Below are positions 255 through 23,911 of a DNA stretch of 23,911 bases, one piece after another; within the stretch, counting starts at the first letter, position 1, and every line of letters begins with the position of its first letter. This DNA is from Octopus sinensis (Eukaryota), in assembly GCF_006345805.1 (NCBI RefSeq), contig NW_021836500.1, positions 1 to 23,911 of the forward strand, written 5' to 3'. The position numbers and the translations under genes were made by a program. A model generated the notes under the pieces. That model saw only the letters and a program-made list of their open reading frames with translations, searched no databases and had not been told where the DNA came from.

Positions 255-1360
255 GTGTCTCAAGAGCTTGAACGCAAAGATGAAATCCGTATCAAGATGA
301 GGAGGGGTCACACTCCTCTCAATCTCTTTGAACAATCCAACTGTACTGAGTCTCTTGTCCTCTTCGCGTCTGATAAAAAATTATGCGATTGGACGAATAA
401 AGTCTTTAATATTCTAACCAAATCCGAGACTGCACAGAAGGCCCGAATTACTGCCAGGAAGTCTGGGGACTTTACCCTCGAATTCTCAAATTCTAGTGAT
501 AGGGACTCGTTTGTGAATGACTTCGAGTATAACAAACCATTTGGCCAGGACGGCCATTATATTTCTGCGTGCAGTCTGCAACCATCGACCGTAGTCTTGA
601 AGGGAATACCATCTTGGGTCTCCGAGGAAGACCTGGATCTTTACCTCAAAGAAATTCTCAACCCCGGTTTTACTTTCCAACGGTTCTACAAAAATGGACG
701 GAGTATACCTGTTGGAAAGTTGAGTCTGAATTCGAGGGCAGAAGCCACTTCGCTTGTAAGGATGGGAATCGAAGTGGGATTTCAAAAAATACGATGCGAA
801 TGGTTTAAAAACCCAGCAACTAGATGCTTTCGCTGCCAACAATTTGGTCACATTGCTAACTTCTGCAAAGAAGTGGAAAGATGTCTTTTCTGTGGTGGTG
901 ATCATAATATGAAAATGTGCCCGATTAAAGGAAAAACTGAGAAAAAATTTATAACTGCGGTCTGAGTGGGCATTTGGCTTGCTACGGTGGCTGCTCTTCA
1001 GCTAAGGCAGCCACTGAACAACTAAAAAAGCAGCTCAGTGCCAGGGACAGACTGGCCAAAGCAGAACACTCAAAAACTGTATGGTCAAAAGCGGAGGCCG
1101 TTGAATCTGTATGGCGAAAACCCACAATTTCCCGCTGTTTTGACTCCTCAACCGCAAACAGATGTTAGTGAAGACGCAACTTTGCCTCCCAATACACACA
1201 CACAGAGCCTCCAACCCGCTTTAAGAGGAAAGCACCAACTATCGACGTTGAGCTTACCTCTATGATTCGCAAAATAATCGCTATATGCGATGAAAAAGGC
1301 CTCGATATCAACAATCTGTTGTCCCTTTCTCTTGGAAGGGAAAGGATTGATCAGGCGTGA
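255..1360 (+). pseudogene. LINE ORF1 (gag-like nucleic-acid-binding protein), frameshifted
   Basis: Knuckles CFRCQQFGHIANFC and CLFCGGDHNMKMC. A third knuckle (YNCGLSGHLACYGGC) lies in another frame after the A-run near 945. Further frameshifts follow; the last piece ends in TGA at 1358-1360, overlapping the ORF2 start. Confidence 0.85.
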
Positions 1361-3981
1361 GCCCCTTTCTGTCTATTATCGCTGTGAACGCACGTTCTCT
1401 AAAGAGAAGGCGTTCAGAGATTGAGGATATGTTATCCCATAACCCCGTGGACCTTTTGATCGTAAACGAAACAAAAATCAAAAAACATGATGATTACTAC
1501 TTGGATGGCTATCGTTCCCTTGATATTAAGTGGAAGCCGGGCTCGATCGCTGGAACAGGCACTTCTATCTACTACAAATCAACTCTAAGGGTGAAAAATC
1601 TAAAAATTGTGTCCGAGGAATTGTGTGAATTCCTCACAATCGACGTCCTTCTGGAAAAAGGGTGGGTAACAATCGGAGGGATGTACTCAAAATCCCTTTC
1701 CAATTATTCATCGCTTATCAAGGACTTTTTTGCCGATAAACACAATCATTTGTCAATACTCCTCGGGGATCTAAATGCCAAATGCACATCTTTTGGCTGT
1801 CTGAGAACCAACAGGGATGGCATCATTCTTAAGAAGCTTTCAGAATCTCTCAGTTTCTCGGTCATCACATCAAACCCCAAATCATCATTACTCACCAGGA
1901 GGGTGGGACTATTTGGGCGTAGCATTGGTCTCTATGTCTACTCTTCAATTTATGGAACAACCGTACACCTTAAATGATATTGGAAGTGACCATCTACCAA
2001 TTTTATACAAACTCAACCTTGGACCTTTAAAGGGTAAACCAACTTTTATACGATATAACCTCTCGACTATAAACTGGGAACACTACCGAAAATGTTTTAC
2101 ACTTTATCTGAGCAATTTCGCTCCTAAACTTGACGAAAATTCTTCATCTGAGGACCTCGAGAAGTCTAGCAATTCCCTTATTGGATACATAAAGTCTTAT
2201 CTGGAAACATATTCTACAAAATCGTCTCAAACAATAGGAAAACTCACATGCCAAACATGAATGTTGAAATCCTACTAAGGAAAAAACAATGTCTAAGGAA
2301 ACAAACTCCCGGCGCTGCGCAGATTTTCGTGACCGGTCCGTTTTGGAAAGTGAAATCTTCACCATTACGGAAGAAATAAGAAATCGGCGAAGGTGGCGAA
2401 GGATAAAAAATGAATACTGAGTGCAAAAAGCTACATAAAGGAAGTCCAAATTTTTGGAAGGTCTACTCGAAATTAACCTCGACGTCTGAGAAAACTATAC
2501 CTAAACTGCTAAAACAAGATGGATCCCCTGCATCTCATGAAGAAATCCCGAACATATTTGCTGATAGTCTCAAAAGAACAAGAAGTCAATCCGGATACAA
2601 ATCTATCTGATTCAGCTTTGTTTGATATGGAAAAAGAGTTGGAAGACAATCTTAGCTCATTACCAATGTGCTCGGAATCTATAACGTGCAAAGACGTGGA
2701 AAATGCAGTTAGATACTCCAAAAATAACGCTCCGGGAAAGGACAAGATAACCATGCGCATGTTCAAAGAAGCTCCCAAGCAACTTTACGAATATTGGGAT
2801 GTCTCTTCTCCCGCAGTGTGAGCTGGGATACGTCCCTTCTTCATGGAAACTGACGGAGGTAAGGATGATACGGAAGCCTGGAAAACCTGGTTACTTGGCG
2901 ACAAGTTATAGGCCTATAAGCCTAATTCCTACCATCAGTCGAATAATGGAAAGGGTAATGTTTGAACGACTCTCTGAACACGTCGAGAGAAATGGTTATC
3001 TCAAAGACGTGCAGTGGGGCTTTCGGAGGGGTCGTTCCTGTGCTGACTGTCTTTATACACTCAATTCGTCGATTGTAAAGGCTCTGGATTTCAAAGAGTG
3101 TCTGACAATTGTGTCTCTAGACATCTCAAAAGCCTTTGATATGGTTTGGCACCTCGGTCTCCTTAGACATCTGGCGAAGTGTCACATAGACAAAGGACTA
3201 TTCCTATGGCTAAAAGACTTCCTCCGCGACAGGCGCTCTGTGATAAGCTTTCTGAACTATGACTCGGATGAACTGAAACTTAAAAGAGGCGTCCCTCAAG
3301 GATCAGTCCTCAGTCCTCTATTATTCAACATTGTGATGAGCAATCTGCCGTCTCCTGTCAACACACGGACGGAAATTTTGATATACGCCGATGATGTTGT
3401 AATCCTTGACATTTCATCGAAACCTGCCTTATCCGAACAAAGGATTATATCATTATGAATACAGTGGAGCAATGGTGCGATGAAAATATGTTCATTATTG
3501 CGCGTGAGAAGTCCGCATTACTGAGAATCACAGAAAGCAGAAATTTAATAAATTAACCGTGCCTGATCAAGAACATACCTCGACAAAACTCAATTAAATA
3601 TCTTGGCTTGTTCATCGATGAAAAGGGAAACTATCTCGAAAACGCAAAATTAAGTAAAAGGAAAGCAACTAATGCTCTGTTCTGCCTGAGGAAGTTAAAT
3701 TTGGAGCCTGATACTTTCCTCTACGTTTTCAATACGGTGATCCTACCGGGACTACTATACGGAAAAGAGGGATGGTACTTCTCTAAAAAGAAGGACACCA
3801 TCTTAACTAATTTGAAAAGTCTCGCAGGCTCGCTTTGAAGCTTGCTTACCACCAAAAAGTTGAAGATCCAATCCCCCTGTGGCTTGAAAGTAAATCCTCC
3901 ATGGTCGGTGAAACTGTCAAAAAAGCTATAAGTGGTTATAAATCCAACTCAATTGTCACTGGGACGTACCTGCAGAGGTAG
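1357..3981 (+). pseudogene. LINE ORF2 (APE endonuclease + reverse transcriptase), multiply frameshifted
   Basis: APE motifs AVNARSL, LIVNETK, LGDLNAK, GSDHLP. RT motifs YRPISL, QWGFRRGRS, LDISKAFD, GVPQGSVLSPLLF, YADD. Motifs are spread over several reading frames. Confidence 0.92.
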
Positions 3982-3985
3982 AAAG

Positions 3986-4016
<31 letters not shown>
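3986..4016 (+). repeat. Internal poly(A)31 tract in the LINE 3' UTR
   Basis: A-run just after the putative ORF2 stop, about 125 nt upstream of the TSD-defined end. Confidence 0.9.
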
Positions 4017-4154: not shown

Positions 4155-4205
4155 CAATTTATAGATTTTTTGATTGATCGGATCTAGAAATTGAGTGGCG
4201 GTCGC

Positions 4206-4287
4206 GCTCGCTGCGCTCGGTCGCTCGCTGCGCTCGGTCGCTCGCTGCGCTCGGTCGCTCGCTGCGCTCGGTCGCTCGCTGCGCTCG
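4206..4287. repeat. GC-rich 17-bp tandem repeat (GCTCGCTGCGCTCGGTC) x4.8
   Basis: Four perfect units plus 14 bp, bracketed by the inverted hexamer GTCGCG (4201-4206) / CGCGAC (4286-4291). Confidence 0.95.
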
Positions 4288-4974: not shown

Positions 4975-5890
4975 ACCTGTCAGGACGTTTTCCGTCTACA
5001 CGGTCTAGCCTACTGGCTCCAGTACTGAAGGGAATTCAATAAAAGTCAAAATCAAATGGATTATAAACCATAATGACTCTTATTTAAAATCATAAAAAAG
5101 AAAATCAACTTTCAAATCGATTGGGCCGGGAGTCGGTAAATACTTTTTGCGAAGAGTGAATTTTAGACATTTTTGGAAACTCCGATAAATTGAAGATACA
5201 TCTTGTACCATTTGTCCAAATCAAAAATTCTATAATAATTATGAATTCATTATTATAGAGAGTTTAATAACAGACAAGGCTGAAGTTGTCTATAAAAAAC
5301 ATCTTCGATCTTTATTTTGCATTGCATTACCATTTTTATTGCAGTAAGTAAATTTCGTATGTGCACACTACAATGTGGTTGAAAGGATCCTAGTTTTATG
5401 TGAGCAATTAAGCTAAAAACATCATGTGCACGTATAAAGATATTATTTTTGTCGAAAGTGATGAGATTGGCTGAGAAGAGTATGTGACAAATAGCATCCG
5501 GTAGATTTCCTTGGAGTGGTTGAATTATCAGACAAATAATTGATTTGAACAACGTTTACCGGGCCTATCCACGGTGTGGGAAATTAGATCCTCGGTCATC
5601 CATTGGAGTCTGAGCAGTATTTCCGAGCCATGAAGGAGTGGATGTTTTTCTTTATTCGGGTGGTTAAAGATGTTTCGATCAGATTTCATAGAGGCATCGA
5701 GAGCCAAGGGATAAATCTCAGAAGACGGATCCAGTCCTGTTTAGACAAGGTCACAGCGTCGATACATGTTGATAGAGCATCGGCCGAAGTAGCTCGTCCA
5801 GCCTTGGAGATCTTACATATGTAGCGAGATTTGCGCCTATCCATATGAGCTTCAGCATGGAAATAGGGTCGGACGGCACCCGGTTGCAAA
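4975..5890 (-). mobile_element. Heavily deleted CRE-like (RLE) non-LTR retrotransposon relic
   Basis: N-terminal KAGRATSADAL...WIRLLRF (about 5700-5850), RT-region LQGNLPDAICHILFSANLITF (about 5430-5520), and RLE-region FPSVLEPVG/LDRVDGKRPD (4975-5037). Confidence 0.65.
5127..5185 (-). mobile_element. Solo hAT right end, related to the 17366-19390 element
   Basis: Reverse complement ...TTTCCAAAAATGTCTAAAATTCACTCTTCGCAAAAAGTATTTACCGACTCCCG aligns to 19338-19390. Confidence 0.65.
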
Positions 5891-5919
5891 TGTTACAAAA
5901 GTTCACACATAAAGCACCA

Positions 5920-6600
5920 ATTCGCGTAGCCCTTCATAGTGTAATTATAATTCACATATTCTTGATAATATTGACATAACGTCCAAAACAACTTTTTTAT
6001 TCACTAGTGATGAAATCCAACCTTTTACACTCTTGTTAACTTAAAATTTATACAGAAAACACCTTTCTATTTTTCCCTGTACCAAGGGCCTTGTGGTCCT
6101 GCAAATATGTGTCAAAAATTATACTTCCGTATATTTTCCATTTTGGATTTCTTAAATTCTTTTCCGTTCGATGATAGGTGGTCCAAAAAAATAAATAATC
6201 CGTTTTAAGCTAGAAGCCACTTCATCTGCAGATTTCGTTCTAATAACCTCAACCACGGCATATTTTGAAAAAGAATTTATCACATGTAATACCTAACTAC
6301 TTATTAATATTATAAAACCCATGAATATGAGTCGTTTGTCTTCGAATAACGTCGTAAATTGACTAAGTCTGCAATATATCGACACGTGGTGTGATCTCTG
6401 CTTTGGTGTTCACTGATCATTAACGAGAATGTAAGAAATTTCATTCTTAAAGACAATTGACCTGGCTATTCTGTCAAGCCGCATTCGCTAGGACTTGCTA
6501 TTGCTATCGAAAACACTCAAATCCTCTTCATTTAACTTTTATTCTTTGATAATTTCCAATTCTTCCTGAGATAGTGTTCTAAATTTAATTATTTTATCAG
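5920..6600 (-). mobile_element. Ginger2/KRBA2-like DDE integrase relic with a 26-nt intron (6293-6318)
   Basis: RYIADLVNLRRYSKTNDSYSW|VLHVINSFSKYA...KSADEV...FFGPP, then VQGKIER after a frameshift. Removing the GT..AG segment restores the integrase core motif. Confidence 0.75.
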
Positions 6601-7188
6601 TTTTAATAGAAATTTATACATAAATAAACGACTTTTTCCTGAAAATTATTTCTTTTTATTTTTTTAATTTGACTAATCTATTTTGTTTGTTTTTATCAAC
6701 AAAACAAGAAACAAAGGTAATCAGGTACAAGCCGTATAAAGAATTGAGAAACTGTTTCTTTTAAGAACAGCTGCTGAGAAACCCTGTTAAGACCACAGGT
6801 CTTCAGCTGGCACAGAAGCTAAGTACCTCGAGCAGACGTTTTACAATGCTATTGAGCTTCACTTGCCTGGGGATCCTCCCAAGGCTTTTAAGTCTATTGA
6901 CTTTTATTGATTTCTTATCTGTGGCTTTTTTTTGGCCTGGGAGTTTTAAAAATGAAATTAGATCTGAATTATAAAAAATAGAATTTTAGCCATCTGATGG
7001 GGAATTTCCAAGCAGGCGTTTCACGATGCGACTAATCTCCACGTTCATAAGGAATCTTCCAGGGATTTTCCGTCTATCTTTTTATATTTTTTAGAGAGCT
7101 TTTTGTACAATTACCCAACTGGTTTTGAAATTATCCCAGGGACAAAGCAATAAGTGTCCACCAAAGAAGTAGATTTTGCGATTTTCGT

Positions 7189-7245
7189 TCCAGTCGGTAA
7201 ATACTTTTGGCAAAAAGCCAATTTTTCACATTCTTGAAATTCAGA
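7189..7245 (-). mobile_element. Second solo hAT right end
   Basis: CAGTCGGTAAATACTTTTGGCAAAAAGCCAATTTTTCACATTCTTGAAATT aligns to the reverse complement of 19338-19388. Confidence 0.6.
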
Positions 7246-7589
7246 CAAATTGAGGAGCCATCCTCTTCTTAGTAGCATCAACATGAGAGATCCAAGTGGA
7301 TTCAGAGCCGTCGACATAACTGATGATAACTACCAATAAGTGGAGGTTTGTTGGCATCTTTCTAACTCCATCAATAGGAGTAATCACGAAATTTTCCGTA
7401 AATTTCGTACACCCCGACAGAAAAATTTCCTGCTTCCTCGAGACTCGTACTGTTATTTTCTGCAGGGGCGCCCATATGATTAACCTTCCATAAAAAGCAA
7501 AATTTACAACTAAAATTTAATAATATTTAAGAATTCATTAAAAAATAAAATTGATTTGTCTCATTACCAAATATTTTATAACAATAAGC

Positions 7590-8508
7590 AGGGTGGCATT
7601 ATAACGCGACCCCGCTAAAATTAATTAAACACAAATTTATTAAAAAACTCCATAATCGTTGACTGTCTATAACTATTTCATCCATTGAAAAACATATACG
7701 TTGACATCCATCTCATCATTAATATTCAATGTTGAATCAGTTGACTCAATTGATTTTGATCAACAATTTTTTCTCGAATTTTTAGCCGTAGTTTTCGGTA
7801 ATGTGCCTTAAAACTATGTATCATTCCGGAATCCAATGGTTGTAAGTGACTTGTTGTTAGAGGCAAAAAGTGCACTTCAATATTCGATAACGTCGGAATA
7901 ATGTGACATGGACAGTCGTCCATAATTAGAAGTATTTTTCCCCCACATCTCATTTGATTATCCAACCCATTTATCTAATCTTGAAATATCATTGATGTCA
8001 TTTATGATTTAGTATTAAATCTGTAATCCGAATATAAATGATAATTGAAGCCTTTGAAACAAAGCGGATTATTAGATTTCCAATCACAAGTGGACAGAGT
8101 TCTTTGCTCCCATCTGAATTACAACAGAAAACAATTGTAATTCTTTCTTTATATTTTTTAACATTTTCAAAATATGGTTGGTTTATTAAAATTATCTTTA
8201 GTTTTATCCGGAGTTGTTAATGATTTTGACGGAATCATTTTATAGCAAAGACAAGTCTTATCTAAAAAAATATCATTTCCATTATATTTGGCACAAATTT
8301 AGTTTGATTTTTCAATCCTTTATAAACTGTCTCAGGATCCACTTAAAAATAATAATTTAAAAACTTTAATGGCGTTATATCGGATAAGGCACATAATTTG
8401 GCGTGGCAATAACTGAGTGGCGGGGTTTGGCATTATAAAGAGAAATTTAAAGAACCAAAAAACGGGGCAATAAGCGGGGTTGCATTATAAGATAGAGGGG
8501 TTTAAGTG
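7590..8508 (-). mobile_element. pogo/Tigger-like transposon relic (DDE_1 fragment plus one terminus)
   Basis: KILLIMDDCPCH...IEVHFLP.TTSHLQPLDSGMIHSFKAHY at 7726-7965. GC-rich subterminal repeats and a TA-flanked end near 8508. Confidence 0.75.
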
Positions 8509-8748
8509 TATTAGAATAACAAAAAAGACATTAGAAAGCATGCGTCCGGAATACAAAATCTCAGCTACTGCGGCAAATAAGTATTTTAATGGATGCCAAT
8601 ACTTATTGTCGTACGTGCCATCCAGATATTATCTTCTCTAGGATCTCAGGAAGGCCTTTGAGAAACAATTCTTAGGCGTCCGAGAGCTGCTTTCGCCATC
8701 TTAAGCCATGTGCTAGGTAGTAGGATTTGTTAGTAAATCACTAAAAAC

Positions 8749-8823
8749 GCCTCGGTGGTGTGTAGCGGTTATCACGCTCGCCTAACACGCGAGAGGGTCT
8801 GGGTTCAACTCCCAGTCGAGGTA
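8749..8823 (+). tRNA. tRNA-Val (AAC)
   Basis: Acceptor stem GCCTCGG/TCGAGGT. D-stem GTG/CAC. Anticodon stem CTCGC/GCGAG with loop CT-AAC-AC. T-arm CTGGG-TTCAACT-CCCAG. A downstream T-run would serve as Pol III terminator. Confidence 0.92.
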
Positions 8824-9199
8824 ATTTGATTTTATTTTTTTCAAATTTATTTTTAATAGATACAAATTAGACTTATCTTTTGTCATTTAAAATATTTTTA
8901 AACCACCTTTTTACAATTTAAATAAATTTTAGCATTTAAAACCATTGAAGAAATTAAAATAGTAAATTTCCCCGGAAATTAATTTTCTCTATTCACTACA
9001 GGACCAACCTTGTGATAGAAATTACAATTTATTTATTTTACTAGTTAGGAAGACAGGAAAAACTAGCCATTATTGACGACGGGAAATTTTAAAAAGAATC
9101 AGGCACCGGAGTGTCTCTACTGAGCAGCATATTTCCCTGATGGACACTTTAGATATCCGACGTCCACTACAAAAACAACCGCGCCTTCTCCAGGATTCA

Positions 9200-9450
9200 T
9201 ATGAGTTATCTAATTTTTCTTTGAGATCGAGACCGTAGGCCAACTTAATGGCGTAACGCCTCTTTTTCTCAAGTTTGTTGATTAGACAAACCCTCTCACC
9301 TGTATCATACCAGCCCTCAAACCCGTAGGTGAAAATCGGTTGTACACATGTCCTGTATATGTAGATGTGTATGTTCTGGACTCAGATGAAATTGATCAAG
9401 CTTCGTAGGATTTTAACGGCTCTCTTTCTTTGGGTATTAGAAAATGAAAC
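9200..9450 (-). mobile_element. Degenerate LINE ORF2 C-terminal fragment
   Basis: IYRTCVQPIFTYGFEGWY...KLE...YAIKLAYG, similar in style to 3700-3860 of the full-length LINE (VILPGLLYGKEGWY). Confidence 0.7.
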
Positions 9451-9810
9451 GATGGCTTATATTTAGTTAGTCGTGCAGCAGAATGCTCTGGGGAGGAATA
9501 AAAGTCGACAAAAACCATCCATTTCTACGCAAAAACAAACTTTAAAGAGCTACAACTAGAGAATAATTTTGATCTTCCTTGAGGATTAATAACTGAATAC
9601 AAGTGCATATTCTTTCTGTTTTAGATGGTCCTAAGAGAAGAAGACTAGCCAGAAAATCGACAGATAAATCTTAAAAATGTATTAGTTATTCAAAACAATA
9701 ATCTAAAATAATTCTTGTGAGTTTTTCTTAATAAGACAAGTGATGTCATCCGTCTATATTATTAAAAGAGTAATATGATTGTTCATACACATATAGCAAA
9801 GTCCATGGCA

Positions 9811-10184: not shown

Positions 10185-10978
10185 TTAAATGATTAGTAGA
10201 TTATTTAGAGATATTATATTAAACATCTTTGGGATATTAGCAAATATTCCAAGACTCTAGATATCATTGAATTAAAATCGATAACTGTTAGAATGCAAAT
10301 CAGAACTGCTCCAATGATTAAATAAATTTTATATTTCGTTAATAAAGCGTCAAATCGTGCCACGCATCCCTAAAAATATATTCATTATTAAATTACAGTG
10401 CTATATGTAATCGCGTTTTTTGAATAACAACTTTGAGGTGGGACAATCAACGGCAAATAATCGGCTGTGGAGTCTGCACCACAACATTTAAACGTGTTTT
10501 GAATAAAATCAAGATTTTTCGTATTAGAATTGAAATTTTTAATTTCTCGCAGCAGTTCTTTCCGTATCAAGTTTATTATCTACAGTTAAGACTATAGTCT
10601 TTAACTTGTGGTTTTTTCACACAATAAATAATTGTTGCGGCCAAGACAAGCGAAAATATGCACAATAGACAAATCGAGAACTAGTTGTTATATTTATTTT
10701 CAATTTTTTACAAAAATACTGCAGCATCGATTATTTTTAAAAGAATAACAAATTCCAGACAACATTCCTATAAATCCAAATATTCCTGCAAAGAGAATTA
10801 TAATTCCAGGTGTTTGTAAATAACTATTATTTAGCATGTTTCTCTGAATAGTATCTTTTAATATCACTACTCCCGCATAGCTGCCCAGTCCTCCAATGAC
10901 CTGTTTTTATAATTATTAGAAATCTACCCCCAATAGGACTATATTTATTATGATCAGAAATTTAGTACAAAACGCCAT
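10185..10978 (-). CDS. Tetraspanin (CD63-like, 4-Cys large extracellular loop), about 217 aa, six exons
   Basis: Exons 10978-10928, 10900-10712, 10680-10606, 10579-10397, 10369-10286, 10256-10185. GT-AG introns of 27, 31, 26, 27 and 29 nt, all phase 0. The spliced product has four hydrophobic TM segments plus FKCCG, PQSC and GC motifs and no internal stop. Confidence 0.9.
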
Positions 10979-11598: not shown

Positions 11599-12768
11599 TA
11601 TTATGGAAAAGTATTTTATATAATTGTAAGTTAAATTATCATTACATTCTAAAATGTGTTTTTCTGTGATGTCTCGTTGTGTTAGTCTTTTTATAAACAA
11701 AAAATTTCTATACTACGCTATAATTCTGACAACCAATTTGCTTAGGCACTTCAAATTTCTAGGATTTTCTCTTTACGATTTAAAAAGAAACTTTCCTCGA
11801 GAACTATAAACGATCTCAAATCGAATTCGGATCCTTTGAATATGACCGATATCAAAAATTAAACATAACGAAAATTACAAAACTCAAATTCAGTGAACTT
11901 GATGAGCGATTAAACATGTATTGACTTAATGAAATCTAGTAAAGCAATTCAATCAGATTCGATGTTAATTGTAAAAGCTCTTAAATTTTGAAAAAATAAT
12001 CCAGAATTAAGAAATGGTTTCAAGTTAAGAAATTTTTAGAAGACAGTGGATCTGTAAATCATGATAAAAAAACTTATTGCTAATTATAATGACACAATCA
12101 GTTTAAAAATTGATCAATATGGATTGGAAAATGTTTATAATGTAGATTAACCCGTTTTTTTACAAGGCGATTACTTGTAATATCCGGTTCTGGAAAAAAA
12201 GGCCCATAACGATGGGAAGATTTAAAACTCAAAGGTGTTGTTAAAAATTTTAACATTATGTTATCTACACCATTCCAATAAGCATGAAAAATTTCAACAT
12301 TTGAAATTATGTTATCCACACCCATTCTAATAAAGCATAAATGAACCGTTAAATTTTTAATAAATGGCTCAGTGATTGTGAACTTGTAAAGAAAAAAAAA
12401 AAAAAAATTTAGTTGCAATAGATCGATGCTCATCTCATCAAATTACTTTTACGTTAAACTCTATTAAAATTTTCTTATTGCCTTCAAGAACTTCCTCGGT
12501 CTTGCAACGAATGGATCAAGGAATTATAAAATCCTTTAAAGCCAATTTGAAAATAAATGATATGATCAAAAAGATCGAGGCGGGGAAAATTGTTAGAATG
12601 AAAATAATGCAATTACGCTTAAAGCTGTTGCCACATTAACATTCTTTGGTTAGAATAAAGTAACTCCTGAGTCATCAAAACTTGCTTTCGTCATGCTCAA
12701 TTGATAAAATGTGAGAAAATTATAATTAACAGTGAATCTAAGAACTACGAAAATAATTATGAAGAAAT

Positions 12769-14968
12769 TAACATTGGGGATTTATTAGAATAAGAAATCA
12801 ATTAATCTAATGTACATGTATGTAAAGAAGAACTGATGGCGATCCTGTTTCCCCTCACTATTGCTTGGGACACGTTCTGGAGCCCGAGGCATTCAGCTCT
12901 CAACGACGTTATAAGAAGAGGTCTCGATTCAATCGGATTCCCATCAGTGCTGGAACCACCTGGATTGGACCGAGGAGATGGAAAACGCCCAGACGGGATG
13001 ACTATCTTTCCGTTTTTGGAAGGAAAGCCTCTCGTATGGGATTCAACATGTTCCGACTCCTTGTCCAAGACAAACATGTTGGAAAATGCCTTCAATGCCG
13101 GCACAGCTGCGGATAAAGCAGAGGACATCAAGAAGAAGAAATATAATGTCACAGTCGGATAAATGGACACGCGAATAAATGGACACTTTCAAAATTTCCA
13201 CATCCAAAAAATGATGATTGTTTTGCATATTCAGATTTAAAAAAATTTACTCTTTATTTCCTAGAATCACCTTTCTAGAAACGCCTATCATAAATTGATT
13301 TGTATAGATTTTTTGTTAAAAAAATTTGGCAAGTGGAAATTTCAGAAATACAATCTCCTTGCAAATTAATTGTCGATTCTCTATGAAACAGAAATAAATA
13401 TTGTTATCGCAGTCTTTATTTCAGATATCTGGACCATCATTGAGATATCCCCTCTGGTATTTACACTGTTTATAAGCTACTAGGTAGAATTGTGTTTTAA
13501 TTAAAATTATCTTAATTTTTAGTTACCCAATTATTAATAGAAAACATAATAAATTGTGGCACGTGTGAGCACTCTTTTGACATACCTTGTTGTCCTGTTG
13601 CATTATTTGGTCAATCTTTATTTTTTTATTTAATTGGATTAGAAGGAATATTTTGCGATGTAGTTTCTTTTAATTAATAAATTATCTGAAATTTCATCAT
13701 TTTGTAATATTTGCGAGTTTATTCTTTCAATCTGTTTATATTGCTTATTTGAAATCTTCTCATTTATCTTTATTCATCGAATTTCACCTTATTTTTTGAT
13801 AGAAAGTTCTATTCTTTATATTCTTATGGCAAACTTTTATTTATTTGTTCCCGGATTTGGCGATCTTTTATTTTAGCGCCCTAAAATCTAAAATGATCAA
13901 TTTCTACCAAATTTTAATCATTATTGGAATGATACTTTTTGGATTACTCAACAAAATTTCGGAATGATACTTTTTTATTATATAAATTTTTTCCCTTCAG
14001 AACTTGCAAAATTCGGGGGTGATCGAGAGGACTAATATTTGTTATAAACGAGAGGATAGTATTAGCTCTCGGGACCATAGTTTTGACACGATTCTTAACG
14101 ATCGCAAATTCTTCAGTTGTCAAATGGGGGTGAAAACGCATCCTTTTCCTCAGTCGCATCAAAATCTCGTCGTAAATTGATTTTGGCCTGGCGTGTCTCT
14201 TCAGCCCGGTCCATGGACCTCTTGAAGATCTTCAGTGCGTAGACTCCCTTGTTCATTACGTTTTTGGCTTCGTTACTGTGTGTCGGCGTGTACACACGTT
14301 GCGCAACCTCATTTATTCGGGCTTTGGAAGCAGTTGGCGACTTGGATAGGAGGTTAAATCTCTTGATCTTTCCAAGTGCCGGGTTTTCGATACTCAGAGA
14401 ATATGTGAGGCTTGAGCTGTTAGGCTCAGTTGTCGTCTGATGGGATTGGGTCTCACTGTGTTTTTGAAGCACAGTAGGGTTCGGAAGTTCGGTGGGATAT
14501 TTAGCTTTGATGGGTTCGCAAAAGGGCTGGGGCTTTACCGCTGTTCGTCTAATGTGTTTTCTTCTTGGTTTTCTTTGATTTTTTTGATTTTTTCAATAAT
14601 TTCTTTGCTGAGCTTCACAATACGCATAGTTCCACGCTTTTTTTATAAATTAAAAAGTAGAATATTTCTCTAAAATATTTAACTAATTGTTAATATTGAT
14701 GTATAAAATAACTATTTATATATTTTTTAAATATTTTTAAGCCAGGTGTTTATTTATTCGCTTGTCCATTTATCCGACTGTGACATATAATGGGCTCACC
14801 GATCGTTACGTTTTCCGGCCGGTTGCTGTCGAAACCCTGGGATCGATTGGGAAGGAGTCGTTGTGCTTCCTCAAGTGTATTGGACGTCTCAAGACCTTGA
14901 GAACACACAATCCTCTGGAGACGAGATGGCTCCTCCAGAACGTGTCCCAAGCAATAGTGGGGGGAAAC
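12769..14968. mobile_element. 5'-truncated, 5'-inverted CRE-like retrotransposon insertion (about 556 bp before the nested insert)
   Basis: 13-bp TSD ATTATGAAGAAAT at 12756-12768 and 14969-14981. The true 3' end (LQNVSQAIVRGN..stop..AATAAA) is on - at 12769-12882. The inverted RLE part on + reads SPRHSALNDVI..GLDRGDGKRPDG..KKYN|GLTDRYVFRPVAVETLG. Confidence 0.85.
13147..14785. mobile_element. TIR element with TGT...ACA ends and 5-bp TSD (Ginger-like, apparently non-autonomous)
   Basis: 34-bp TIRs with one mismatch (13147-13180 / 14752-14785). TSD TATAA at 13142-13146 and 14786-14790. Removing the element restores the CRE frame KKKKYNGLTDRY. Confidence 0.85.
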
Positions 14969-15560
14969 ATTATGAAGAAATAATTAAGAAATTTCACAAA
15001 ATCTATGCTTCTCAGGAAAATGAAAATATAGGTGATCGCTAAAATATTATGAAAATGTTAGGAAAGTCAGATAAAAAACATAAATTTTTTTATTTTTATA
15101 AATATTTTATGTTTTCAGTCATTTTTGTATAAAAAATATTTAATCTATATTGTGAGTTCATGTTTCAACTATAAAATATTATTCAAATTGCCTTTCGCAT
15201 CCGCAGATTTTTTGATCAAAATCGGCGGATTTGAAAGGTTTTATTGTATTTAGTCTTATTTAATTTGTGACGACAATTAAAGATCCTTTTTTATTTGTTC
15301 TCTCAGTGCAGGCTGTACCCCTGTCAAAAATAAACAATATTGGACATTGAGTATTTTGTATAAAAATTAATTACTTTTTTAACTTAAGTTTGGTTAGTAT
15401 TTTTGTTGTTAGAGTATTTTAAGAGAATCCAAATTGAATTGTTTATAATCTAGATTCTTAATGTCAAAATTCTTTAACAAATAACGAAAACGGAAACTGA
15501 ATAACTATTAATTATAATCCATTAATATATACGAATCTAGATTCCTAACGAAAATAAAAA

Positions 15561-17709: not shown

Positions 17710-19151
17710 TTGATGGGAAAAATTAGAAAAGAGAAGTACGATGCACTACTTGCATGTTTCGATAATGCGCGACATTTTCAATCAAACTGGACTGAAACTT
17801 TTGCATTCACGTCTAATTCAGAACAACTACCGAAATGTCTCATTTGCCAGGAAACTTTGAATCAAAATAAAAAGTCAAATTTAGAGAGACACTTTAACAC
17901 AAAACACTCAAATTTCGCCAAAAAATATCCAATTGGTGATTCCCAAAAGAAAGCTGTAGAAGAACTTACAAAGAATATTCAATTCGAGAATTCTGCTTTT
18001 AAATGTTGGTCTGACAATGCCAGGACTGCAAATATTGCCAGTTTTTTGATAAGCCAAGAGATCGCAAAAAGGGGAAAACCATTTACCGATGTGGAATTTA
18101 TAAAGGCATGTTTCATTAAAACCTCTGAAGAACTTTTTCACGATTTTTCAAATAAGGCAGAAATCGTGAATAAGATAATGAATATACCTTTATTCGCGAA
18201 AATAGTAGCCGACAGGACTTTTAAGATGTCTTCGAATGTATCTGTTCAACAAGTTTCTGACATGAAATTGTCTAATTCAATTTCAATAGCAATAGATGAA
18301 TCATGTGATATAAATGACATTGCACAAGTATCATTGTTCATGTCATACTTAGGTGTCTCTGTTTGTTCGTTATGTGTCTCGAGGTTTCCTGAGGCAAGAA
18401 CTTTTGGCATTATTGCCTCTAAAGGGTCAAACCCGTGGTGAAGATCTTGTTGGCGCAGTCGTAGAATATTTTGAAACGAATTATATTCCTCTTAATAAAA
18501 TCGTTTCAATTTCAACTGACGGTGCTGAAAGCATGCTGGGATCGAGAAAGGGATTTATAACTTTAATTAAAATAAGAATTGATCATGAAGTGATTACTCT
18601 ACATTGTATTATCCACCAAGAAGCACTATCTGCGCAAACGTTTAAGGATTTTAGAAAAGAAAAAGCAACACTATCGTTCGTTATAAACCCTCTACGTGCT
18701 AAAGTCAGCAATTTAAATTTATTGCCATTTGAAATCAACGCAGCTGAGTTCGAAATGCAGCTATTGGACTTGACATGTAAGGAATTATGGGCATCAAAAT
18801 TTATTCGCCTTTCAGAATTACTTGAAACCTTGGAACAGAAACATTGTCTGGTAAAATTAAAAATGATATTAATGTTATACAAAAGAAACTTGAAGATGTG
18901 ATTCTCGAAACTTGGAATTCTCTTCCAGATTCTTATTATGAATTAAAAAAATTTGCATACGGAATTTTGACAATATTCGGGTCCACTTATATGTGTGAAC
19001 AAAGTTTTCTCATATGAATTATATAAAATTGAAATATAGGAACAAAATTACAGATTCGAATTTGGAATCTAACCTCAGATTAAAATTAACGACTTGCGAC
19101 CCAGACATTAACCAACTCTCCAAAGAAATGAGGAATCACATTTCTCATTAA
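17710..19151 (+). pseudogene. hAT transposase, deleted and frameshifted, with a 25-nt intron (18328-18352)
   Basis: BED finger CLIC...LERHFNTKH; AIDESCD; ISTDGAESM; HCIIHQEAL; STYMCEQSF. A large deletion follows HQEAL. Frameshifts near 18860 and 19005. Confidence 0.88.
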
Positions 19152-21235: not shown

Positions 21236-21269
21236 TTAGAATATGGTTTATTTTTTTATTAATTATTGT

Positions 21270-21520
21270 TTAATTATCCTAATTTTTAATGGTAAACCTA
21301 ATAAATTATTCCACGTGTGAGCACGCAGTTGATTCACCTTGTGGTGATGTTTATATAATTAACCCTTTTCTTAATTTTTTATATAATTGGATTTAGTGGG
21401 AATATTTCGAGATGCAGTTTCTTTTAATGATTAAATTATTTGAAATTTCATCATTTTGTGATATTTTTCGAATTTATTCCTATAATTTGTTTCTTTTACT
21501 CATTTTGAAATTTCTGTAAC
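21270..21520. repeat. Diverged copy of the interior of the 13147-14785 element (about 13500-13750)
   Basis: Shared blocks in the same order: CACGTGTGAGCAC, AATTGGATT, GGAATATTT, GAAATTTCATCATTTTGT. Confidence 0.75.
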
Positions 21521-21889: not shown

Positions 21890-22225
21890 GGCGGGAAGCC
21901 GACGCGACCGAGAAAGAATTGGAGCGCACTATCGCAAGGGATATCCGCTCGAAAAACCATCTCGATTCGCGGGCGTCGCCTGTGATAGCAGACATTTTTT
22001 TTTATTTTTCAAATTGAAAGAAAAAAGAGAGAATAAAATAGTTATTACAAGTCGCATCCCATAACAGAGACTTGCCGAACTCAAACGGGAAAGTCGAAAG
22101 ACCGTAGGGTCTTTTTCCGTCTCCCCTCGCAAGCCCAACGGGTTCAAGGATTGATGGAATTCCAGCGGCCGTGAGCCCCCTCTGAATAACGTCGTTAAGT
22201 GCTGCATGGCGTGGTGCGCGCCCTG
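21890..22225 (-). mobile_element. CRE-like RLE fragment with internal deletion
   Basis: [36 protein letters not shown] (22045-22225), a short AT-rich spacer, then TGDARESRWFFERISLAIVRSN (21890-21997). Confidence 0.8.
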
Positions 22226-22293
22226 TCAATTTATCGATAAACTTCAAACAATCTTGTTATTGATTTATCGACTAGAGTCTAGTTGAGTCTATC

Positions 22294-22459
22294 AAATGGT
22301 TTTTCTTTTTTGCGATCTCGTGGCTTATCAAAAAATTGGTAATATTTGCAGTCCTGGCATTGTGATACCAATATTTAAAAGCGGAATCTCAATCTGATTA
22401 TTCTTTGCAAGTTCTTCTACAGCTTTGTTTCGCAAATCACCAATTGGATATTTTTTTGC
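22294..22459 (-). mobile_element. Fragment of the same hAT transposase family as 17710-19151
   Basis: Reverse complement aligns closely with about 17920-18087 (AAAAAATATCCAATTGGTGAT...GACTGCAAATATT...GAGATCGCAAAAA). Confidence 0.85.
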
Positions 22460-22576
22460 TTTTTTATTCTTTCAATCTTGAAATATGTACGTCAGTTACA
22501 GTGTTCCCTTTATCGTCTTCTAGAACATACAAATTTCCATTAACGGTTCTGACATAATAAAGTGTAGTATCTAGTC

Positions 22577-23332
22577 CATAGGTTTTCACGAGAAATTTCT
22601 CGCGGCGCAAATGCTAATAAAAAATAATCTCGCGGCACATAATCAAATATCAAAACATAATTCTAAAATTCAAAATTTATTATTTTTACATATTTTTTCT
22701 ATGTCTGGCTCAATATTTGATAAGGCCAGTCGCATTTCTGAATCCAAATCCAGTAGATTTTCTCGCTTATTTGTTTTAATGTTTTGTAATGCAGAAAATC
22801 CCTTTTCACAAAAATAAGTTGTTGCAAATTGTAGAATTATCCGCATTGCTTTATCTGTTATGTTTGGAAATCTAGAACGAATTTTGATCCAAAATTCGCC
22901 AATATTTAATTCCGTATGTGATAATTTTAAGGTACGATCATTAAATAGTTCAATAAGCTCCATATTTTCGAACGGTGATAATTCATTACTATGACTAACC
23001 AAAAATGGATTCCGTATCTAAAACTAATTATTTAAAATAAATACCCAATCATATTTTCCAATGTCTATGTCTATTAATTATATTTTTCAATTGTACGAGG
23101 TTTCATTTTTTAATTCTTTAAAATAATCAATTGAATAATCTTTATATTCCGGGTGCTTAGATGAAAAATGTCTACGAAGTTTAGATGGAACCATTGATTC
23201 ATTCGACAACACCTCCATGCAAATCAGGCACTGTGGTAAACTATTTCCAGTGCCACAACAGTCAAAACCCATAGATAAAAAAGATGATTTGTAATGACGA
23301 ATACTCCGATACACAAACATAACAAATAGCAA
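22577..23332 (-). mobile_element. Buster/ZBED5-like hAT relic, internally deleted, with a 27-nt intron (23018-23044)
   Basis: BED finger PQCLICMEVLSNESMVPSKLRRHFSSKH. YDW|IRNPF after splicing. Dimerisation region FWI...FATTYFCEKGFSAL. Degenerate end near 22577 preceded by ATCTAGTC. Confidence 0.85.
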
Positions 23333-23354
23333 CGTGATTATAATTTATTATAAT

Positions 23355-23911
23355 CGTCCCCTCTGTCCAATCCAACTGGTTCAAGCACGTTGGGGAAGCC
23401 AGCAGCGTTGAGAGCTCTTGAGATTACGTCGTTGATTGCTCCATGGCGAGGCGAGCGGCCTGCGCTCCGGCGGCAGGAAAGGGGGTGAAGGCCTTTCACG
23501 TCCACCGTACCTCCGCATCGACAGGGATGAGAGGCGCAGACATCGAGCCCCAGCCGAAGAGCGACCCCGATACGCAGTGTTTCGTTGTCCAATAGGGAAC
23601 CCGTCGATGACGTTGGGTAAGCGTCGAGCCAGGATCCACTATGCGCGTGTGCTGCCGAAAGCAGGCACGCTAGCCGGTGTTGGTCTAGCTCTGGTTTCAT
23701 CTTCGAAAACGAGTCGGCGGCCCATATTTCATCCCATTCCCGTTGCACAGACATGTCGAACGGGAGAGGTAGGTTAGCGTCAGTCCAGAATTCCAGAAGG
23801 TCGGCAGTCGGCAACTCCAGAGAGAGTTCGTTGAAGGGGAGTAGAACCTCTCGGACAAGTTGCCGGCTTCTGGAAATTGAAGAGAAGTGTGCATGTGGAG
23901 CCAGATCTTTT
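23355..23911 (-). mobile_element. CRE-like non-LTR retrotransposon, C-terminal part (continues beyond the window)
   Basis: SGSWLDAYP...LRIGVALRLG...CRCGGTVDVKGLHPLSC...RHGAINDVI...LEPVGLDRGD; truncated on its 3' side near 23355. Confidence 0.88.

Follow-up and report, generated by a model that had tools for sequence, protein, structure and literature searches.

The P element of Drosophila carries three introns of about 50 to 60 nt, the third of which is spliced in the germ line only, the elements Tc1 and Tc3 of C. elegans carry one intron each of about 40 to 50 nt, and the transposase gene of maize Ac likewise contains introns. For the Tc1/mariner elements Sardine, Thon and Anchois of Paramecium, introns have been predicted within the open reading frames (ORFs; PMC3464196). 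Here we analyse a stretch of 23,911 nucleotides (contig NW_021836500.1, positions 1 to 23,911; hereafter the window) in which the remnant of a transposon of the Buster type, a group of the hAT superfamily, is interrupted by a 27-nt segment at positions 23018 to 23044 of the minus strand. We call the family of this element Buster-B to set it apart from a second Buster lineage in the window, Buster-A. The segment is very probably a spliceosomal mini-intron of the size usual in its host, inherited from a Buster master copy with four introns and now left as a relic in a dead copy, in what is likely the genome of a dicyemid.

On the coding strand, the reverse complement of window positions 23018 to 23044, the 27 nt read GTATTTATTTTAAATAATTAGTTTTAG and have the ends GTATTT...TTTTAG, as required of a U2-type GT-AG intron. 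The initial annotation placed this segment exactly between the peptides YDW and IRNPF, and reading the sequence confirms this on the minus strand: the 5' flank is GGA AAA TAT GAT TGG (G K Y D W) and the 3' flank ATA CGG AAT CCA TTT (I R N P F). The segment sits in phase 0 and is the fourth intron of the Buster-B family. At 27 nt it is divisible by three, and two in-frame TAG codons lie within it; reading through it yields YDW-VFILNN*F*-IRNPF (asterisks, stops), and its removal yields GKYDWIRNPF.

The further claim that YDW and IRNPF are contiguous in Buster/ZBED5-type proteins is borne out in every relative that we examined. A HMMER search with the spliced C-terminus of 126 amino acids (threshold E<=1e-3) matched 2,856 proteins, and most of the best 150 align in a single stretch that starts upstream of the junction. 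Nine retrieved relatives read YDWVRNPF, YDWLRNPF, YKWVRNPF, YDWIRNPF, FDWVRNPF and similar, and in an alignment of 12 sequences the junction is ungapped with W465, R467 and P469 invariant, as are C535, E536, F539 and S540 in the hAT C-terminal region. This latter region is encoded by the exon that follows the segment (exon 5, 22670 to 23017, minus strand), which runs from IRNPF to KNNKF and a TGA stop and comprises the hAT dimerisation region with its invariant C-E...F-S residues. In the window copy it matches PF05699 (Dimer_Tnp_hAT) at an E value of 5.7e-7, which passes the cut-off, and Buster proteins show 44 to 52% identity over residues 3 to 125.

Among the HMMER representative matches, one near-identical protein (P0004) led to a sister copy on contig VCDQ01009621.1 of assembly GCA_006345805.1, filed under Octopus sinensis, to which all coordinates prefixed L001 or L002 refer; no other near-identical sequence was found. 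The sister copy (L001 ~5319-7438) is 96% identical to the window copy and complete end to end, with the inverted repeats CAGAGGTTTTCA and CATAGGTTTTCA at its ends and an 8-bp target duplication, CTATAGAG, on both sides. Rather than lacking the segment, it carries it as 26 nt at L001 6965-6990, one base being deleted. The near-identical protein itself is RefSeq entry XP_029654508.1 (L001 6001-8885), named [quoted passage not shown], a chimeric model put together from pieces of two different decayed Busters and no real gene.

Compared with full-length Busters, the sister copy holds three more insertions, all of them AT-rich and bounded by GT..AG. Intron 1 lies at L001 5702-5736 (35 nt, or 32 nt with another donor site), intron 2 at L001 6267-6295 (29 nt, joining GRLNGL to VSLLKAQ) and intron 3 at L001 6827-6858 (32 nt, joining MFPKTN to DSDG); none of these lengths is divisible by three, and each removal restores the reading frame. 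Four 1-nt frameshifts relative to full-length Buster proteins, a sign of ordinary decay, together with stop codons mark the sister copy as a dead member of the family too. Taking out the four segments and bridging the four frameshifts gives a conceptual transposase of 580 amino acids that covers 98 to 99% of full-length Busters annotated as ZBED5-like or SCAND3-like, at an identity of around 50% and an E value of 5e-181. In its alignment, junctions 2 and 4 show no gap, and junctions 1 and 3, which fall in variable stretches, are almost gap-free. The relatives of this reconstructed protein bear the domains PF14291, PF27073 and PF27046, and the reconstruction is collinear with them; the closest ones, P0173 and P0178, are each encoded by one uninterrupted ORF. 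At the sites of the Buster-B introns, further Buster remnants on the contig of the sister copy (L001 ~8007-9543 and 1544-2205) lack an intron, and the Buster-B introns are therefore lineage-specific. Exact look-ups of 13 window ORFs gave no match, and spliced protein queries of 126 and 209 amino acids returned nothing useful in searches for transcripts or further copies; these queries also missed the known P0004 and are hence uninformative.

Taken together, the GT..AG ends, the motif restored by removal, the presence of the segment in the sister copy and its three companions in the same gene argue that it acts as a spliceosomal intron, as the initial annotation had proposed. It might instead be a chance in-frame insertion of 27 bp in a decaying copy that carries GT and AG by accident and was never spliced. 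The window copy is a pseudogene with many lesions, the insertion would be as AT-rich as its surroundings, and with a length divisible by three the reading frame alone does not force its removal. However, a GT start combined with an AG end is found in only 0.24% of all 27-mers of the window on both strands, and since the boundary of the segment can be slid by one base (G/G), the chance at a single site is around 0.5%. A sister copy at a different locus has the same segment, and the other lesions of that copy are single-base frameshifts, a different type of damage. Moreover, the three other GT..AG segments of the gene shift the frame and have to be taken out for collinearity, and the segment has the same size and end letters as the introns of host genes described below. 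With three further GT..AG segments in this gene and nine in host genes, the contribution of chance becomes negligible, and we consider an accidental insertion very unlikely.

The window copy is itself heavily decayed. Directly upstream of the 27-nt segment, only 28 nt of the preceding exon remain (exon 4 remnant, 23045 to 23072, minus strand, ending in DIDIGKYDW and aligning to L001 6938-6964). They are preceded on the minus strand, at 23073 to 23110, by the deletion junctions, where k-mer mapping and alignment identify a piece of exon 2 of about 20 nt, AAAATGAAACCTCGTACAATTG, from the KKMKPHTIAE region next to a short filler; the k-mers map to L001 5674-5688, to 5823 onwards and to 6938 onwards. 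Missing are about 134 bp and about 1.08 kb, introns 1 to 3 included. Exon 1 is nearly complete (23111 to 23320, minus strand): it reads M-FVYRSIRHYKSSFLSMGFD...CLIC...H..KH, a zinc finger with weak zf-C2H2_12 and zf-BED matches, its tblastn matches are P0009 and P0173 at residues ~49 to 116, and stop codons follow downstream of the zinc finger in the same frame. Beyond it lies a remnant of the 5' leader (23321 to 23357, minus strand). This 5' part of the window copy is 96.5% identical to L001 5443-5695, and homology ends at window position 23357, or L001 5443, where a different repeat abuts and cuts the element; the sister copy runs on to its 5' inverted repeat at around L001 5319. The window copy consequently has the 3' repeat only, CATAGGTTTTCA on the plus strand at 22577 to 22588, with which the 3' untranslated and subterminal region (22577 to 22669, minus strand, with GCCGCG motifs) ends. 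Both copies stop at the same base, window position 22577, and their flanks diverge past it.

With about 1.2 kb of its interior gone and stop codons in what is left, the window copy does not hold an intact transposase ORF and is a dead, 5'-truncated and internally deleted derivative. The initial annotation's identification of a Buster transposase thus stands as far as the family is concerned, but this copy is no working gene, being truncated, missing internal parts and interrupted by stops. For the same reasons, the intron in this copy is a fossil without a current role.

The repeat that truncates the element at 23357 is one of four diverged window copies of a conserved protein module (...RH.ALNDV..R.L..AG.P..LEP.GL.R.DGKRPDG...), which lie at 12836-13162 (plus), 14746-14983 (minus), 22005-22256 (minus) and 23338-23814 (minus). 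The module has no Pfam match and related copies are found on the sister contig (L002 ~558-1311), and it probably belongs to a repeat family. Past the 3' end of the Buster-B remnant, fragments are nested within one another like a mosaic: at 22294-22459 (minus) lies a 166-bp piece of the second Buster lineage, 87.5% identical to 17917-18084, and a short ORF at 22464-22610 (minus) resembles, by eye, the C-terminus of an LTR-retrotransposon integrase, with no Pfam match.

Whether the 27-nt segment is of host size, as the initial annotation held, can be judged from two ordinary genes, one in the window and one beside the sister copy. The first, found through the list of stop-to-stop segments in the window, is a host tetraspanin gene at 10217 to 10978 (minus strand, ATG at 10978), which sequence reading and PF00335 delimit. 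It has four GT..AG introns at 10901-10927 (27 nt), 10681-10711 (31 nt), 10580-10605 (26 nt) and 10370-10396 (27 nt). After splicing, residues 7 to 196 of its product match profile positions 4 to 211 of 225 in one stretch (E 3.4e-23), compared with an E value of 7.9e-8 for the largest exon alone. The protein has the CCG motif, and the gene is the sole clear host gene that we saw in the window; a possible fifth intron at 10257-10285 (29 nt) would alter the C-terminus. The second is an IQUB gene (L002 18900-20300, minus strand) with GT..AG introns of 27, 47, 28, 26 and 22 nt at L002 20045-20071, 19787-19833, 19580-19607, 19183-19208 and 18912-18933, respectively, and one further junction that we could not read. 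Its spliced product matches positions 1 to 134 of 140 in PF25805 (E 4e-33), and a single ORF matches positions 29 to 82 (E 1e-14). The annotated IQUB model spans more than 4 kb and overlaps a stretch that resembles a reverse transcriptase of a long interspersed element (LINE). The nine host introns measure 22 to 47 nt with a median of 27, and the Buster-B segment matches them in both length and end signals.

Introns of this kind are known from dicyemids: in Dicyema sp., the median intron is 27 bp long and two thirds are shorter than 30 bp (PMC6543705), while D. japonicum, whose host is Octopus sinensis, has a mean intron of 38 bp, a GC content of 36.7% and 49% repeats (PMC6736024). These introns were predicted in gene models and agree with an earlier survey of 40 genes of D. 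japonicum (PMC6543705, PMC6736024). Metazoan genes with a median intron of around 27 bp, as expected of a dicyemid source, are what the tetraspanin and IQUB genes present. Judged by this architecture, the genome is most likely a mini-intron genome of a dicyemid mesozoan (Dicyema). As the IQUB introns of 22 to 47 nt are of the dicyemid and not the octopus type, we read the sister contig as dicyemid DNA, and the simplest view is that the window and this contig probably both come from a dicyemid. The authors of the D. japonicum study state that they could not separate parasite and octopus cells completely (PMC6736024), and our searches of the literature found no report of dicyemid contamination in the O. 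sinensis assembly or of mini-introns in octopus. A practical by-product is that a contig of 188 kb in the Octopus sinensis assembly annotated by RefSeq appears to consist of dicyemid DNA.

We had at first favoured an octopus host and horizontal transfer from the parasite, as O. sinensis is the species under which the sole near-identical sequence is filed and the gene model next to it extends over more than 4 kb, and abandoned this view once IQUB resolved into exons separated by introns of 22 to 47 nt and the window tetraspanin proved to be built alike. For the window and the sister contig to be true octopus DNA, the transposon would have had to move from a dicyemid parasite into its cephalopod host. 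Such a move has its attractions, since D. japonicum lives in O. sinensis (PMC6736024), Busters occur in very diverse animals and the only close match comes from the octopus assembly (GCA_006345805.1, VCDQ01009621.1). Yet ordinary host genes at both loci have introns of 22 to 47 nt throughout, the octopus median intron is 1,520 to 2,467 bp long (PMC10700109), and with both loci dicyemid-like no transfer is needed, so we give this scenario very little credence.

Two other sites of the window had been named together with the 27-nt segment, and both hold up as mini-introns in that their removal restores the frame. A 25-nt GT..AG segment interrupts Buster-A (~17710-19150) at 18328 to 18352 on the plus strand; without it, DESCDINDIAQ is joined to VSLFVRYVS and the alignment with relatives is gap-free. 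In frame, this segment translates to VSLFMSYL, close to VSLFVRYV at the start of the next exon. The similarity is not significant at the nucleotide level (p 0.06), and the codons of the two peptides differ at seven of eight third positions; the likeness might be a trace of local duplication or the junction of two diverged copies. The other segment, 26 nt with GT..AG ends at 6293 to 6318 on the minus strand, lies in the remnant of an integrase-core (rve-like) gene, where removal joins NDSYSW to VLHVINSFSKY. The rve match spans this junction and remains below threshold (E 8e-5, 23 bits against a cut-off of 32.6). The 1.3 kb upstream yielded neither a reverse transcriptase nor any other domain for this remnant, which could be either a Ginger-like DNA transposon or a fragment of a retroelement. 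Of the claim that three unrelated DNA-transposon genes carry such introns, the mini-intron at each site therefore stands, but two of the genes are both Busters and the third is defined by a sub-threshold rve match only.

We do not follow the initial annotation in treating retroelements without introns as a telling sign of this genome: retroelements copy themselves through processed RNA, so the absence of introns is expected of them and nothing special. The window contains a non-LTR retrotransposon at 255-4016 (plus strand), with a zinc-knuckle ORF1 and an endonuclease/reverse transcriptase ORF2 broken by frameshifts, whose end is a poly(A) of 35 nt at 3982-4016; after it, at 4205-4287, comes a perfect tandem repeat of 17 bp in 4.9 copies (CGCTCGCTGCGCTCGGT). 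Remnants of pogo/Tigger-type transposases (DDE_1) lie at 7729-8216 (minus) and 12382-12636 (plus). In the former, TAA and TAG replace two conserved tryptophan codons (KS*MTS, QD*INGLD), which points to G-to-A changes. No mini-intron is evident in the part that we read. An AT-rich direct repeat of about 250 bp with 77% identity occurs at 13512-13760 and 21263-21515.

The set of 15 introns assembled in this way, six in transposons and nine in host genes, is uniform in its signals: all start with GT[A/T], 13 of 15 finish with [T/C]AG, and the GC content ranges from 6 to 39%. By eye, the 27-nt intron has only loose TTAAT/TAAT-like branch-point matches and in the sister copy a CTAAT lies around 16 nt before the 3' end of intron 3. 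All four introns of 27 nt, one in a transposon and three in host genes, contain an in-frame stop when read from the sequence. This fits the pattern in Paramecium where, as summarised in PMC3464196, stop-free introns of 3n length are depleted, their retention escaping nonsense-mediated decay.

In an intact Buster-B element, the host spliceosome would remove all four introns from the primary transcript to give the transposase. Removal of intron 4 would link codon W465 to I466 within the motif W-(I/V)-R-N-P-F, with TATGATTGG joined to ATACGGAAT, and set the last exon in frame. This exon encodes the region for hAT dimerisation together with the invariant C-E motif, whose E we take, by analogy with Hermes, to be the third catalytic acidic residue. 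Were intron 4 retained, the TAG at its seventh codon would end translation ahead of the last exon.

The initial annotation raised the possibility of control through host splicing, in which retention or removal of this or another mini-intron would limit transposase to certain cells or stages in the style of the third P-element intron. This idea would supplement rather than displace a mini-intron of host size, and the product of unspliced RNA, a zinc-finger protein cut short, could serve as a repressor. Such control would exploit the in-frame TAG that retention places before the exon for dimerisation and catalysis, four introns within 1.8 kb would offer several control points, and the P-element intron IVS3 provides a precedent. 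Even so, host genes hold the same introns at similar density, so that those of the transposon are not marked out, the splice-site letters equal those of host introns, and in the dead window copy there is nothing to be controlled. With such introns in every gene of the genome, the simplest view is that the gene for the transposase is just built like those of the host, and we regard regulation as unlikely.

Another way to make such segments disappear would be their elimination from the DNA itself, either in the manner of the internal eliminated sequences of ciliates or by a process specific to dicyemids. Short AT-rich segments of 26 to 30 bp correspond to the modal size of eliminated sequences in Paramecium (PMC3464196), and many circular contigs were noted in a Dicyema assembly (PMC6543705). 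The segments described here end in GT..AG and not in TA..TA, however, host genes have GT..AG segments like them, and the published dicyemid introns of the same size come from gene models and agree with the survey mentioned above (PMC6543705, PMC6736024). We consider DNA-level removal extremely improbable and retain splicing as the explanation.

Several points nevertheless weigh against a spliced four-intron master copy in a dicyemid. A single sister copy was found, and introns 1 to 3 are known from that copy alone; intron 1 falls in a poorly conserved stretch, and its exact ends are uncertain (35 or 32 nt). No undamaged copy of the family is among those seen, and we infer the active, spliced transposase gene from its damaged descendants. 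Splicing in vivo is likewise deduced from the sequence, with the insensitive spliced-protein queries bearing on it neither way. The organism, finally, is named from gene architecture and the link to the octopus assembly and not from a marker gene.

How the introns arose is a separate question. That transposase genes gained them, as the initial annotation suggested, is plausible given that the closest relatives are single uninterrupted ORFs; the introns of Buster-B were presumably gained, as its relatives are intronless, and their dicyemid-like sizes make a gain within the dicyemid lineage likely. Overall, three lineages of transposon genes, with intronless closest relatives elsewhere, hold at least six GT..AG introns of 25 to 35 nt at six distinct positions. 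We tentatively raise the possibility that dicyemid genomes are still gaining mini-introns and that their cut-and-paste transposons record this, while thinking it rather doubtful. Tandem duplication of a flanking exon was considered as a source and rejected (p 0.6 for the 27-nt intron, with the Buster-A intron borderline as given above). In general, ungapped identity of the 15 introns to their flanks is no better than that of shuffled sequence, and no similarity was seen among the 15 introns or to their flanks.

By itself the finding is of little import, since transposase genes with host-size introns are known and the window copy is dead. It does document the extreme introns of 25 to 35 nt of the putative dicyemid lineage in its DNA transposons, and such genes will be fragmented by gene finders or repeat annotators whose shortest permitted intron exceeds about 20 nt. 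If the introns were gained, they bear on the de novo origin of tiny introns as opposed to the shrinkage of old ones, and if the gain is real and recent, dicyemid transposons would be a tractable system for the origin of new introns in an animal.

Neither of the two dicyemid genome papers (PMC6543705, PMC6736024) contains a word starting with "transpos" or mentions DNA transposons, and our searches found no literature on transposon introns in dicyemids. In length (27 nt), GT..AG ends and AT-richness, dicyemid mini-introns are the same as intron 4 of Buster-B. The published ones sit in conserved host genes, for which Ogino et al. 2010 (cited in PMC6543705) speak in their title of a "conservative exon/intron structure", whereas those of Buster-B interrupt the gene of a mobile element with intronless relatives. 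These relatives, annotated as ZBED5-like or SCAND3-like, share with Buster-B the N-terminal zinc finger, the DUF4371/FAM200-ZBED5 RNase-like core and the hAT dimerisation region, and the level of identity given above extends over nearly their whole length. Also Buster-like are the short inverted repeats of the sister copy and the central TA of its 8-bp target duplication. Buster-B differs in lacking an N-terminal extension of about 50 amino acids that is present in most relatives and in having four introns of 27 to 35 nt where the relatives found are single uninterrupted ORFs.

A common theme with introner elements is the link between mobile DNA and the origin of introns. Introners make new introns in host genes, whereas here, in reverse, the transposon's own gene holds the introns, and since these are copies neither of each other nor of their flanks, they are not introners. 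Among the closest parallels are the P element, Tc1 and Tc3, Ac and the Paramecium elements, which like Buster-B have host-size introns in the transposase gene and need the host spliceosome to express it. Compared with all of these, the introns described here are as short as 25 to 35 nt, the host is most likely a dicyemid and the transposon family is Buster. Host-size introns in transposase genes are thus an already known kind of arrangement, of which Buster-B is a further case.

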